A stretch of DNA of 64,000 nucleotides, taken from positions 124,001-188,000 of IMG/VR virus record IMGVR_UViG_3300034358_000008, one strand, 5' to 3'. Under the pieces are notes generated by a model that saw only the letters and a list, made by a program, of their open reading frames with translations, searched no databases and was not told the DNA's origin. The translations under genes and the position numbers were made by a program. This document shows, one piece after another, positions 21,987 to 24,984 of the stretch (positions are counted from its first letter, which is position 1; each line of letters begins with the position of its first letter).

Positions 21987-22511
21987 TTATGCCTTAACGA
22001 TTGTAAAGCGTGCATCGTAGGGAGGTAATACAATGACCTCTTTCTCCGATTTAGCTTCTTTACGTCTTGCAGTTGCAATCAACAGGTTGAGTTCGTCTGT
22101 AATCCAAATGTAAGCGTCTGGTGTGTTGTGTAGCTGCACTACAGTTGATCCATAAGCCTCAGCCATGGATTGATCAGTTGTGAAGCTTAGAGGGCGTTCC
22201 AGAGCGTATTCATAAGACTCACCGATGTGGTGTGGTTTTACTTTAGCTCCCAACCAATCGCGTTTCATCAGCCCCATCGTGTCTTGGTAAGCAGACGTAG
22301 GATAGAATCCACGGAATAGATTAGTTCCCTCAGGTAGTGGCTTAATAGCTTTAAGCTGTTCAGCGATGTCCTTCAACTCAGTGTACATATGCATGTCCGG
22401 TAGTTCAACCCATCGGACCAGTAACTTGATTGCATCAGGCATAGCCATGTAAGCGACTGTTACCTTATCATCCAGTTTCTTTACATCGAACGTCTTTGCT
22501 TCTTCGTTCAT
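21987..22511 (-). CDS. ADP-ribosyltransferase, R-S-E (ARTC) clade
   Basis: LFRG, SFTT...AEAYG and EKEVIVLP in the expected order; 4-nt ATGA overlap with the upstream NADAR-like ORF. Confidence 0.75.
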   Translation of the reverse strand: MNEEAKTFDVKKLDDKVTVAYMAMPDAIKLLVRWVELPDMHMYTELKDIAEQLKAIKPLPEGTNLFRGFYPTSAYQDTMGLMKRDWLGAKVKPHHIGESYEYALERPLSFTTDQSMAEAYGSTVVQLHNTPDAYIWITDELNLLIATARRKEAKSEKEVIVLPPYDARFTIVKA

Positions 22512-22882
22512 TGGTAACTCTCATTCAACAATTCACATAAAGCTCGTGCTTGGGAGATATCGGTATTAGCGAAACAATCGCTTAACCACAGATCATTAGC
22601 TTGAGCGCCTACAGCTAGTTCTCGCATGAGTTCAGGGTTTGCCTTAGCCCATACTCGCCAAAGATCTTTATAAGCTTCCCAGAGGTCTATGGACGTATCT
22701 AAAGGAGGTTTACCTTTGCCGTCACGCCAGTTACTACCACCTGGATTGTAACCTTTAACATCGCACTGATAATGACACTCAATAGTCCGCCCATCCGGCA
22801 TATAAGCAAAGAGTGCACTGTAACGTTTATCGCCAACGGAGGAACATTCGTATCCTCCGCGACGCTTCCACCGGTATGTTAC
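22508..22882 (-). CDS. NADAR-like protein (putative ADP-ribosylhydrolase); no canonical start codon for the full-length frame
   Basis: Frame extends 27 codons upstream of the 22801 ATG (VTYRWKRRGGYECSSVGDKRYSALFAY-MPDGRTIECHYQCDVK); E-x-SS...SA...[TS][IV]E-xx-[YF]Q...K resembles DarT1-associated NADAR. Confidence 0.6.
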   Translation of the reverse strand, partial: VTYRWKRRGGYECSSVGDKRYSALFAYMPDGRTIECHYQCDVKGYNPGGSNWRDGKGKPPLDTSIDLWEAYKDLWRVWAKANPELMRELAVGAQANDLWLSDCFANTDISQARALCELLNESYQ

Positions 22883-24984
22883 TTTGGGACTTCAGTTTCT
22901 TTGCTGGCCAGATAGGCTGCGAGGATTACATCCAAGCGTGGTGCCTTGAGGATCTTCTGACCAATCTCCAACACGTTAACTCTGCAACCCGTAAGGTTAA
23001 CACCCAGCTCACGTTTATGGTAATCACTAATGCCTTGGATGGCAGCAGTTTCCATAACCGTTGTTTCACGAGCAATGTTCAGAATCTGACTAACGTTAGG
23101 ATAAGTCGATACAATGTCCAAGTCAGCTACGTGTGTCCAGATCAAGCTCCGATAGTCGGGGAAGTCTTTAACACACTTAACGCCATTAGGACCCGCCATA
23201 TAGGAAGGCAGTGTAACGATCCATCCATCGTGACCTACCACGTATTGATCTAAGTCATGAACCATCTGGTCAGAACTAGATCCAATTACGCATGGTTCTG
23301 GTCGAGCCAAATACCAGAAGTGCATATCGTCAACGAGGCGCTTAGGGTTCGAGTTAAAGTTCTTAAAGTCCGAAGACTTAGAGAACAATGTAATCGATGC
23401 ACCCAAGTCACTGATCTTCTCATCAAGTTGTTCCAGTCGGATACTGTCGATGATGTTGTAGATGCCGTAACGAACCTTGTGGTTCTTCTGCATCTCGATG
23501 TGCCATTCGATCCCGAAGAGATGGTCAGTTTCTGCAAACTTCAACTTACCAAAGTTCAGCTTAAAGCTAACCTTGTAACCAGCGAATACGTTTACACCCC
23601 ACTCGAGTTTATCAACCGATTTCCATACAGGCTCACGGTGTTCTACTTGGTAGGAGTGCTCTTCGAATTCGTAGATAGCCGATACGGTATCATCATCATC
23701 GAAGTCTGGTACGGAATCATCATCCGCGTCTTCGTCCAGTTCTTCCTCATCTTCGTCTTCAACCGCAATAGTCTCGGTTACGGTTTCAGTGGTAACGACG
23801 TCTTCGGATGGATTAGATACACTCCAGTAAGGGTGACTACCCGAACGGTCAGCCATAGACTTGTCGGCATTCTTTAGGAATGCTTTCAGATCGTCTTCTG
23901 TCTTGATCTCAGATTCTTCATCAACGCTCAGTTCTTTACGAAGGATTGCATCCAATGCATAACTGGATTCTTTACCTTTAGCCAGACGAGTTACACGATA
24001 CGTCGACATCGAGTCAATGCACTGGAAGCTAGCTGGAGCTGTAATCCAATGCCATTGGTCTTCTGGACCTTTAGACTTAGTCACACCAGAAGCGGTAGTG
24101 TTCATCGCTTGGTCTTGACGATAGTGGAAGTAACGGAACTGCTTAGGTACAGAAGGATCACTGAATACTTCAGCTGGATCAATCCCATAACGCTCCAACG
24201 TAGCCAAGATTTTGGACATGTCGAAGTCGATGTTCCAGAAAGCAAAGAAGTCAGGCTTCCACTCATGCAAACGTTTCATGCACTGAATAACGATATCGGC
24301 AGGAGACTCAACTACTTCGATTTGGATATTCAGGTTACGTGCTTTACGTAAAGTCACCAACTCAGGAATACGTTCGAGTTCATCAAACGTCTCTTGTACT
24401 GGATCTTTCAGGTCTTCTACCCAATGCTTGAGATAAGCAAGGTAAACATTAGACTTGTGTGTAACAGACATACAGATGATCTGACCATCGTTCTCAGATT
24501 CATAAACGTTGGTTTCAATGTCACCGCCTGCTACGGTGTTACGAGAGATCAATCCCGGATAGGTCGTACGGTAGTCGTTCTTCAAGCAACATACAGAACT
24601 AACGTCAGAGCCATAAAGAAATGGACTGCGACTAAGCTGTCGCATTCTAGGATTAGGTCCCATGCTGTAATCTTTCAATGCTTTCGCTACAGCGTATGGC
24701 ATCTTAGACTGAGTCGTCTTGAACTTACGTAACTGACTCAGTGGCATGTAGTCTTTCTTTTCTTTGTACGGTCTTAACCGTTCTTCTTTGTATACGGCTG
24801 GATCGATATAAAAAGAACGTTCGTAGTTAGGAATCATTTTGATTCGACTAATCCTACGCTTATCCTTAAGGTGAACTACTTCCTTAACGACGTGCATGTC
24901 GTTACGACCACCTTTCTCGTTTACAAAGGTAATGTGTTTGGCTTCAATGCCTACCACATCTTCCTTACTGAATTCTTCGCTCAT
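22879..24984 (-). CDS. Split family-B DNA polymerase, 3'-5' exonuclease plus motif A part (phiKZ gp82-like)
   Basis: ExoI DIET, ExoII FWNIDFD, ExoIII YNIIDS, polymerase motif A DIVSTYPN; motifs B and C absent. Confidence 0.85.
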   Translation of the reverse strand: MSEEFSKEDVVGIEAKHITFVNEKGGRNDMHVVKEVVHLKDKRRISRIKMIPNYERSFYIDPAVYKEERLRPYKEKKDYMPLSQLRKFKTTQSKMPYAVAKALKDYSMGPNPRMRQLSRSPFLYGSDVSSVCCLKNDYRTTYPGLISRNTVAGGDIETNVYESENDGQIICMSVTHKSNVYLAYLKHWVEDLKDPVQETFDELERIPELVTLRKARNLNIQIEVVESPADIVIQCMKRLHEWKPDFFAFWNIDFDMSKILATLERYGIDPAEVFSDPSVPKQFRYFHYRQDQAMNTTASGVTKSKGPEDQWHWITAPASFQCIDSMSTYRVTRLAKGKESSYALDAILRKELSVDEESEIKTEDDLKAFLKNADKSMADRSGSHPYWSVSNPSEDVVTTETVTETIAVEDEDEEELDEDADDDSVPDFDDDDTVSAIYEFEEHSYQVEHREPVWKSVDKLEWGVNVFAGYKVSFKLNFGKLKFAETDHLFGIEWHIEMQKNHKVRYGIYNIIDSIRLEQLDEKISDLGASITLFSKSSDFKNFNSNPKRLVDDMHFWYLARPEPCVIGSSSDQMVHDLDQYVVGHDGWIVTLPSYMAGPNGVKCVKDFPDYRSLIWTHVADLDIVSTYPNVSQILNIARETTVMETAAIQGISDYHKRELGVNLTGCRVNVLEIGQKILKAPRLDVILAAYLASKETEVPK

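Follow-up and report, generated by a model that had tools for sequence, protein, structure and literature searches.

A probable -1 ribosomal frameshift would fuse the phiKZ-like phage DNA polymerase to an additional conserved domain

How can a conserved protein domain be made in full when its reading frame offers no start codon? This question is raised by the gene for the catalytic half of the split DNA polymerase in a phiKZ-like jumbo phage, which we analyzed within a window of 64,000 nucleotides (all positions below refer to this stretch). A preliminary description, made from the sequence alone, had proposed that the polymerase subunit may be fused to a NADAR-like domain by a -1 frameshift at C_CCA_AAG. 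The sequence features on which that proposal rested proved correct in every detail. Its interpretation, in turn, was only partly supported: comparative data strongly favor the frameshift and extend it to the whole phiKZ-like clade, phiKZ itself included, whereas the NADAR label remains unproven. We found no published report of such a second polymerase form in the literature searched.

Anatomy of the polymerase/X junction

The zero-frame ORF on the minus strand (24984..22879) encodes 701 aa (80.6 kDa) and matches PHROG 3011, DNA polymerase, with E 5e-226. It is the N-terminal (exonuclease plus palm) subunit of the split B-family DNA polymerase and a homologue of phiKZ gp82/DNAP-N, the role of gp82 being taken from bioRxiv 10.64898/2026.09.30.755723. 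Megablast hit the polymerase genes of 201phi2-1, PhiPA3 and Phabio, with 77% nucleotide identity to 201phi2-1 gp144, the last 200 aa are 73% identical to phiKZ gp82, and the flanking virion-protein genes are the same. The gene ends GTC CCA AAG TAA, placing the heptamer CCCAAAG (22888-22882) in X_XXY_YYZ phase directly before the TAA stop (22881-22879). In the -1 frame, a TGA at 22894-22892, one codon upstream of the heptamer, limits the productive shift window to a 13-nt overlap; the frame then reads AGT CCC AAA GTA ACA TAC CGG TGG and stays open up to the TGA at 22510-22508. Similarly tight windows of 10-16 nt occur in L002, L005, L006, L008-L011 and L028 (L numbers designate phages and assemblies in our comparison). 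Long open frames on both strands of the window hold 26,781 codons and contain exactly one in-phase V_VVA_AAG heptamer, which is this one, located in the only place where a -1 shift can be productive; this is more than chance would give.

The -1 frame encodes domain X (22511..22882, minus strand; 124 codons, 14.2 kDa), a member of PHROG 9995 (E 3.8e-51 over residues 3-123 against profile positions 2-123 of 124), a family with more than 1000 homologues, mostly stand-alone proteins of 122-135 aa, and no characterized member. Its first 27 codons (22802..22882; VTYRWKRRGGYECSSVGDKRYSALFAY) contain no ATG, GTG or TTG, and no ATT, ATC, ATA or CTG either, but carry six residues that are invariant in the family: E12, S14, G17, D18, S22 and A23. 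The first ATG (22799..22801, Met28 of X) is a conserved internal Met/Leu position of the family rather than a start and is not preceded by a Shine-Dalgarno sequence, yet ORF finders use it to call a truncated 97-aa protein, and the same miscall produces 95-96-aa or 38-aa fragments in GenBank records and metagenome gene calls. In contrast, the next gene (21987..22511, minus strand; 174 aa, PHROG 29772, function unknown) has an ATG overlapping the stop of X (ATGA), that is, an ordinary coupled start.

We next searched for elements that might stimulate slippage. A hairpin of about 14 bp with one bulge (22864-22831), formed by the Gly-Gly (GGAGGA) and Ser-Ser (TCCTCC) codons of X, is predicted at about -17 to -19 kcal/mol, with a z-score of -2.3 on a 56-nt window and -0.35 on a 101-nt window. 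As the preliminary description had remarked, it begins 17 nt downstream of the heptamer, beyond the usual 5-9 nt. It is identical in PhiPA3, PS119XW, L006 and L009, but weakened in phiKZ, different in Phabio and absent in L028, L133 and 201phi2-1, indicating that it is not conserved across lineages that keep the heptamer and is probably not the stimulator. No consistent downstream structure or upstream Shine-Dalgarno-like element was found in junctions with the heptamer next to the stop (type A) or further upstream (type B), Rfam returned no frameshift element at the junction, and the window has no tRNA genes. The more likely stimulator is the adjacent stop codon, which lies 0 nt (12 junctions) or 3 nt (2 junctions) after the heptamer in all 14 type-A junctions; this role is inferred from published cases (PMC5009743), in which view slow termination would leave tRNA-Lys on AAG in the P site.

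Conservation of the heptamer and loss of start codons

To test whether the arrangement is programmed, we compared 40 distinct polymerase/X junctions. In all 25 junctions with X in the -1 frame, an in-phase slippery heptamer lies inside the overlap, and 20 of these 25, phiKZ included, have no usable ATG, GTG or TTG. The heptamers are C_CCA_AAG, G_GGA_AAG or A_AAA_AAG, exactly the three most efficient -1 motifs in E. coli (PMC4066793). Conservation exceeds what the protein sequence requires: the codon before the heptamer encodes V, N, P, S or A before CCA and L or R before GGA, and the third base of all seven different codons matches, with a joint chance of about 6e-6 under the codon usage of the window. 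Pro-Lys changes to Gly-Lys with G_GGA_AAG in L028 and L136, indicating that the constraint is on the nucleotide pattern and not on the amino acids. Among start-less lineages, codons 3-27 of X show 352 synonymous against 175 non-synonymous codon differences in the X frame, as compared to 34/509 and 59/454 in the other two frames, a coding pattern confined to the X frame. These data render it very unlikely that X is decaying, with only the 97-aa product or nothing being made and the heptamer merely reflecting the conserved Pro-Lys end of the polymerase, a reading whose support is that gene callers and GenBank annotators call only 95-97-aa or 38-aa fragments.

The preliminary description had set as a refuting condition that close relatives show a GTG or ATG start and no conserved heptamer, and this condition is not fulfilled. 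Some relatives do have GTG (PS119XW, 201phi2-1) or ATG (PhiPA3) starts, but the heptamer is conserved in every one of them, and most lineages have no start. Start codons flip between near-identical pairs (PS119XW with GTG and HPP-Temi with none; L009 with ATG and L006 with none), while the heptamer is kept. The alternative raised there, a single mutation or error in an ancestral GTGA overlap, is rejected, as the start-less state is widespread and the only state seen in the deep-branching lineages. A sequencing or assembly error is likewise rejected, as the same start-less junction is present in independent assemblies, namely L005 (a 96% relative from another metagenome, in which ACA has become ACT, synonymous in the X frame), L006, the isolate phage HPP-Temi, phiKZ and PA7. 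Slippage of RNA polymerase in place of the ribosome is also very unlikely, since CCCAAAG has runs of only three bases and type B has six A's, both shorter than the runs usually needed for transcriptional slippage (PMC5009743).

A further rival is that X is made as a separate 14-kDa protein by ribosomes that terminate at UAA and reinitiate on a non-canonical codon (GUA or ACA here, AUA in phiKZ). Relatives with TAATG or GTGA overlaps (PhiPA3, L009, PS119XW) do look like ordinary coupled genes, five lineages have a start codon in the right place, so that independent initiation of X occurs in some phages, and most family members outside this clade are stand-alone proteins whose Met aligns with the ACA position. 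However, the codons at that position are ACA, ACT, ATA, GTA and GTT, of which only ATA is a known weak start, and GTA as a start codon, another suggestion of the preliminary description, is rejected. In type B, moreover, the polymerase stop lies inside the X coding region, up to 49 nt past the conserved Glu codon, and termination-reinitiation therefore cannot give a full X. Nor does reinitiation explain the phase-correct heptamers, their switching among the three best motifs or the matching third base of the preceding codon; the existence of in-frame fusions also speaks against it, and we consider it unlikely.

Other lineages have an in-frame TAG (TAG-C, type D), a +1/-2 arrangement (the type-C GAAAAGAAG junction) or a true in-frame fusion. 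L123 (contig JAAIGE0100541199.1), a close relative of 201phi2-1, differs from it by one extra C and encodes exactly the predicted trans-frame peptide ...PPKVVSPSIVYTW; this C lies in a C-run and could be an assembly error, also showing that indels can occur, or be miscalled, at this spot. L138 is a second case of in-frame fusion. Protein analyses used only the two separate pieces and these naturally uninterrupted ORFs.

A model for polymerase recoding

In the explanation we favor (probability of roughly 0.8), most ribosomes reaching C_CCA_AAG followed by UAA would terminate and give the 701-aa subunit, while a fraction would slip one base back, with tRNA-Lys moving from AAG to AAA and tRNA-Pro from CCA to CCC, then read GUA ACA UAC and add the 124 residues of X, giving a predicted DNAP-N-X protein of 825 aa and about 95 kDa. 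As X has no initiation codon of its own in this phage, this would be its only route to full-length expression. The yield could be low, as these heptamers alone gave only about 0.3% shifting in E. coli (PMC4066793). In this view, the arrangement is ancestral in the phiKZ-like clade of nucleus-forming phages, with deep lineages using A_AAA_AAG further upstream, the phiKZ/201phi2-1/PhiPA3 group, which includes the window, using C_CCA_AAG (twice changed to G_GGA_AAG) next to the stop, and other lineages having switched to the remaining arrangements. Our analysis establishes the sequence anatomy, the conservation of the signal, the loss of start codons and purifying selection on the start-less part, whereas the occurrence and frequency of slippage, the existence of the trans-frame protein and any enzymatic activity of X are inferred from sequence.

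Several known systems resemble this junction. E. coli dnaX (tau/gamma) uses the same class of motif, A_AAA_AAG being identical to that of the type-B relatives, to produce two forms of a replication protein from one gene in a set ratio (PMC5009743). In dnaX, however, the shift truncates the protein, gamma lacking domains that tau has, and is accompanied by an upstream Shine-Dalgarno-like element and a stem-loop 6 nt downstream, neither of which was found here; here the shift would extend the catalytic B-family polymerase subunit, not the clamp-loader, with a separate foreign domain. Phage lambda G/GT and other tail-assembly-chaperone frameshifts (G_GGA_AAG) represent conserved phage -1 shifts at X_XXA_AAG that add a C-terminal domain to a fraction of the product, with the recoding mode and exact site varying between lineages while the two-product logic is kept. 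The present system concerns replication and not morphogenesis, and in other phages the added domain exists as a free-standing protein. In Bacillus subtilis cdd, tRNA-Lys slips -1 on A_AAG within A_CGA_AAG at the very end of an ORF, yielding a C-terminally extended protein (Mejlhede et al. 1999, cited in PMC5009743); that event is regarded as incidental and adds a short tail, whereas here the extension is a conserved folded domain and the full heptamer is conserved.

If the frameshift is real, the replicative polymerase of the best-studied jumbo phage has an undescribed isoform and an unannotated domain, neither of which is mentioned in the recent cryo-EM work on gp82-gp50-Rhc. It would also correct the annotation of dozens of GenBank genomes in which X is missing or cut to fragments of 38-97 aa, give a function-linked handle on the PHROG 9995 family, and add an unusually clear natural series in which one junction has used -1 slippage on three different heptamers, an in-frame stop, a +1/-2 arrangement and a plain fusion.

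Possible affinities of domain X

The preliminary description had further inferred that the isoform could carry a de-ADP-ribosylase to the replication fork. Sequence searches did not support the NADAR assignment: none of 55 family members hit Pfam NADAR (PF08719) at E<=10, Pfam, NCBIfam and PADLOC gave nothing for X, a profile search of PDB sequences gave only spurious uL3 hits (best E 0.009), and hhalign against YbiA alone or an 11-sequence NADAR alignment gave a probability of 0.2%. As a search of IMG/VR with YbiA returned a single locus whose match region did not translate without stops, ten phage NADARs were taken from GenBank instead. An AlphaFold2 model of X (pLDDT 96.8) showed only weak fold similarity in Foldseek searches: 8bau (NADAR with ADP-ribose) gave TMq 0.50 and E 7.9 in the PDB, and giant-virus NADARs gave TMq 0.54-0.61, probability 0.6-0.69 and E 0.36-0.47 in BFVD, where NADARs were the best hits outside X's own family apart from a few uncharacterized proteins.

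As compared to the NADAR ADP-ribosyl-glycohydrolases DarG1, T4 AdfN and E. coli YbiA, X is likewise a small alpha+beta domain, and an E-INS-i alignment is collinear, pairing RFSA with LSNF, DG with dG, invariant E35 with the invariant NADAR Glu, H-Y-Q with H-a-y-Q, and the last helix N-x-A-R-A-L with N-x-L-G-x-x-L. E35, K43 and D102 are invariant in X, and E35 aligns with the NADAR Glu in both hhalign and MAFFT, although these alignments are not statistically supported and the Glu-Lys spacing is 8 residues, not 7. X is also 30-60 residues shorter and lacks the conserved P-x-x-A-K-R-x-G-R helix region of NADARs.

Based on this weak similarity and on domain context, we infer, with about even odds, that X is a compact NADAR-like or other ADP-ribose-processing enzyme that would clear template adducts, and that tethering to the polymerase would carry it to the fork and into the phage nucleus. 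A precedent is phiKZ AdfM (gp104), an anti-DarT2 macrodomain factor that acts inside the phage nucleus (PMC13309987) and shows that chimalliviruses need a DNA de-ADP-ribosylating enzyme there despite the shell; AdfM is a separate protein, however, whereas X has a different fold and would, hypothetically, enter as part of the polymerase. More tentatively, all phiKZ-like nucleus-forming phages might make the longer polymerase form by translational recoding, with X a miniature NADAR-type enzyme stripping ADP-ribose (DarT-type base adducts) from the template, fusion being its way through the shell, and PHROG 9995 a template-clearing module that phages bolt onto DNA polymerases, RNA polymerases and helicases. 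If X does reverse DNA ADP-ribosylation, this would be a polymerase-tethered counter-defense and an example of piggy-back import into the phage nucleus. In line with an ADP-ribose or template-clearing role, X is elsewhere fused in frame to RNA polymerase, a Dda-like helicase, SLOG and DUF4326, the latter two representing the same fusion niche that has been described for NADAR and Macro domains (PMC9503650).

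The polymerase gene and its start-less downstream frame

The region belongs to a phiKZ-like (chimallivirus) jumbo phage. The window lies on a 324,912-bp IMG/VR contig, and the closest cultured relative is Pseudomonas phage 201phi2-1, at about 77% nucleotide identity. The 701-aa minus-strand ORF 24984..22879 is the homologue of phiKZ gp82 (PHROG 3011, E 5e-226), which a 2026 preprint shows to be DNAP-N, the exonuclease-plus-palm half of a split B-family replicative polymerase (bioRxiv 10.64898/2026.09.30.755723). Within this ORF, an acidic low-complexity run (VEDEDEEELDEDADDDSVPDFDDDD; 23689-23763, minus strand, polymerase residues 408-432) lies in a stretch that may be an insertion, and may account for part of the size difference from phiKZ gp82 (701 against about 638 aa).

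Every sequence feature reported in a preliminary description of this junction was confirmed. The ORF ends GTC CCA AAG TAA, with C_CCA_AAG in phase at 22888-22882, the -1 frame is closed by a TGA one codon upstream, and an uninterrupted -1 frame of 124 codons then ends at 22508. The 27 codons preceding the ATG at 22801 contain no ATG, GTG or TTG, and no ATT, ATC, ATA or CTG either. A hairpin of about 14 bp is located at 22864-22831.

The 124-residue product of the -1 frame, termed X here, belongs to PHROG 9995, a family without known function. It has more than 1000 homologues in the protein collection, mostly stand-alone proteins of 122-135 aa with no Pfam domain. In the family alignment, the invariant residues E12, S14, G17, D18, S22 and A23 all lie upstream of Met28, and the natural N-terminal Met of stand-alone homologues aligns with the window's ACA codon. 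The 97-aa ORF starting at ATG 22801 would therefore lack conserved core residues.

Polymerase/X junctions in related phages

To place the junction in context, we collected polymerase/X junctions from GenBank phages, IMG/VR and metagenomes and compared 40 distinct ones (collected loci are denoted by L numbers). X directly follows the polymerase in all but one (L120). The junctions fall into five types. In type A, comprising the window, a 96% relative (L005), L006, L009, PhiPA3, PS119XW, HPP-Temi, phiKZ, PA7, Phabio, 201phi2-1 and others, X is in the -1 frame and C_CCA_AAG lies 0 or 3 nt before the polymerase stop; in L028 and L136, the heptamer is G_GGA_AAG instead. In type B, represented by ten lineages (for example, L045, L047, L055 and L108), X is again in the -1 frame, but A_AAA_AAG lies 24-96 nt before the polymerase stop and the -1 frame encodes a Ser/Thr/Gly/Gln-rich linker followed by X, without a start codon. 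In several of these lineages, the polymerase stop lies inside the X coding region.

Type C is the Psa21-like group (L014-L021, L124, L127 and L130), in which X is in the +1 frame and an invariant GAAAAGAAG stands in an otherwise variable stretch. Some members carry GTG or TTG at the expected place, whereas others have CTG, ACG or TCG there; L014, L020, L124 and L127 have no canonical start near the N-terminus of X, and L017 and L019 have only a TTG four codons upstream of the expected position. A -2 slip of tRNA-Lys from AAG to AAA would fit this arrangement, although a +1 shift is also possible. In type D (L084/L087, L117 and L129; junction near locus position 2500 or 1900), X is in the same frame as the polymerase behind a single TAG followed by C (TAG CTA or TAG CTG), with no start codon, suggesting stop-codon read-through or a suppressor tRNA. 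Type E comprises two true in-frame fusions, L123 and L138. L123 (contig JAAIGE0100541199.1, locus positions 1780-1800) is a close relative of 201phi2-1 with one extra C in the C-run, CCCCCCAAAG in place of TCCCCAAAG, which puts the polymerase and X in one uninterrupted ORF encoding exactly the peptide predicted for the -1 product of 201phi2-1; this could be a real locked fusion or a homopolymer error.

Evidence for programmed -1 frameshifting

All 25 junctions with X in the -1 frame have a phase-correct slippery heptamer inside the overlap, and 20 of them lack any canonical start. The three heptamers found are the three reported as most efficient in E. coli, with up to 54% shifting with a pseudoknot, about 0.3% alone and up to about 3.7% with a good 3' context (PMC4066793). 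While the amino acid before the heptamer varies (V, N, P, S or A; L or R before GGA), its codon always ends in the base that completes the X_XX triplet. The joint chance of this under the window's codon usage is roughly 6e-6, a rough figure, as the lineages are related and codon usage differs between phages. Pro-Lys is replaced by Gly-Lys while the X_XXA_AAG pattern is kept. Within the window, in-phase X_XXY_YYZ heptamers of any kind number 49 in 26,781 codons, but the efficient V_VVA_AAG class occurs only once, at this site. No tRNA genes were found in the 64-kb window.

A polymerase tree placed type B in the deep branches, with types D and E (L138) nested among type-B lineages, whereas type A is derived and type C is sister to the phiKZ group. 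Start codons appear and disappear between near-identical pairs while the heptamer stays. In start-less lineages, codons 3-27 of X differ mostly at synonymous sites in the X frame (352 synonymous against 175 non-synonymous differences) and not in the other two frames (34/509 and 59/454), from which we infer that the stretch is translated.

In type A, the stop codon next to the heptamer is the only consistently conserved neighbor. A likely course, inferred rather than shown, is that tRNA-Lys on AAG waits in the P site opposite a stop and re-pairs with AAA; nearby stops are known to stimulate shifting in other systems (PMC5009743). The hairpin pointed out in the preliminary description is real, but a stimulatory role is doubtful, as it lies 17 nt downstream of the heptamer, which is too far for the usual stimulators. 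It is identical in several genera, weakened in phiKZ, replaced by a different pairing in Phabio and absent in others, and may either matter locally or be a by-product of the Gly-Gly and Ser-Ser codons. A 35-nt stretch containing the hairpin and a GGAGGA (CGTCGCGGAGGATACGAATGTTCCTCCGTTGGCGA; window 22830-22866) is identical, including all synonymous sites, in the window and in L002, L003 (PhiPA3), L006 and L009, that is, across phage genera whose overall identity is about 76%. For type B, our search for a stimulator returned none.

Taken together, the sequence observation holds, and the comparative evidence supports its reading as a programmed frameshift well, with a probability of about 0.8 on present evidence, the slippage itself being inferred. 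The proposed mechanism is an ordinary bacterial -1 frameshift. Its closest analogue is dnaX, also a replication gene with A_AAA_AAG, and the lambda G/GT and B. subtilis cdd cases are close in site type. What is new is the gene, a phage replicative polymerase subunit, as well as the cargo, the breadth of the clade and the fact that phiKZ itself carries the arrangement unannotated. GenBank shows only a 38-aa PHIKZ082.1 in phiKZ, annotated from RNA-seq, a 95-aa call in PS119XW, two fragments in HPP-Temi and nothing in HUST_1. Full-text searches found no mention of a frameshift in this gene or family, although most subscription journals fell outside their coverage and an earlier report cannot be excluded.

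Candidate functions of X and its domain context

The preliminary interpretation was supported only in part; the proposed NADAR-like identity of X is plausible but unproven, and in our estimate about as likely as not. Sequence methods assigned X to no family: Pfam searches returned nothing for 55 members, NCBIfam and PADLOC returned nothing, and hhalign against NADAR alignments gave a probability of 0.2%. The AlphaFold2 model is confident (pLDDT 96.8). Comparison with solved structures yielded no significant match, a NADAR-ADP-ribose complex (8bau) reaching TM 0.50. Against viral models, the strongest hits outside its own family were giant-virus NADARs (TM 0.54-0.61, probability 0.6-0.69), followed by partial DUF4326 matches. 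The single local hhalign alignment and an unconstrained MAFFT alignment agree on a collinear register, which pairs RFSA with LSNF, DG with dG, the invariant E35 with the invariant NADAR Glu, H-Y-Q with H-a-y-Q, and the last helices; this agreement is suggestive only.

Domain context is more telling. In other phages, X is fused in frame to SLOG and DUF4326, the partners listed for NADAR and Macro domains (PMC9503650), as well as to an N4-type RNA polymerase, a Dda-like helicase and a DprA-like protein. Among the collected proteins (P0121, P0122, P0126 and P0136) and loci (L024, L037, L072 and L059-L090), X occurs N-terminally fused to N4-type RNA polymerase fragments and to Dda-like SF1 helicases, C-terminally fused to DprA/SLOG proteins, between DUF4326 and SLOG, and inside giant ORFs of 1160-1790 aa. 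A domain repeatedly tethered to enzymes that travel along nucleic acids fits an activity on template lesions such as ADP-ribosylated bases, an activity that is inferred here from context and weak similarity. phiKZ already needs a macrodomain enzyme, AdfM, inside its nucleus to counter DarT2 (PMC13309987). We hypothesize that fusing X to the polymerase would deliver it both to the fork and through the nuclear shell.

The same polymerase gene is also interrupted by group I introns (Rfam RF00028, 55-72 bits) just after ...HVADLD in PhiPA3 (L003:3003-3308), HPP-Temi (L011:1884-2219) and L120 (1545-1998). In HPP-Temi, the intron is accompanied by an HNH endonuclease ORF, and GenBank annotates the exons as separate or truncated polymerase genes.
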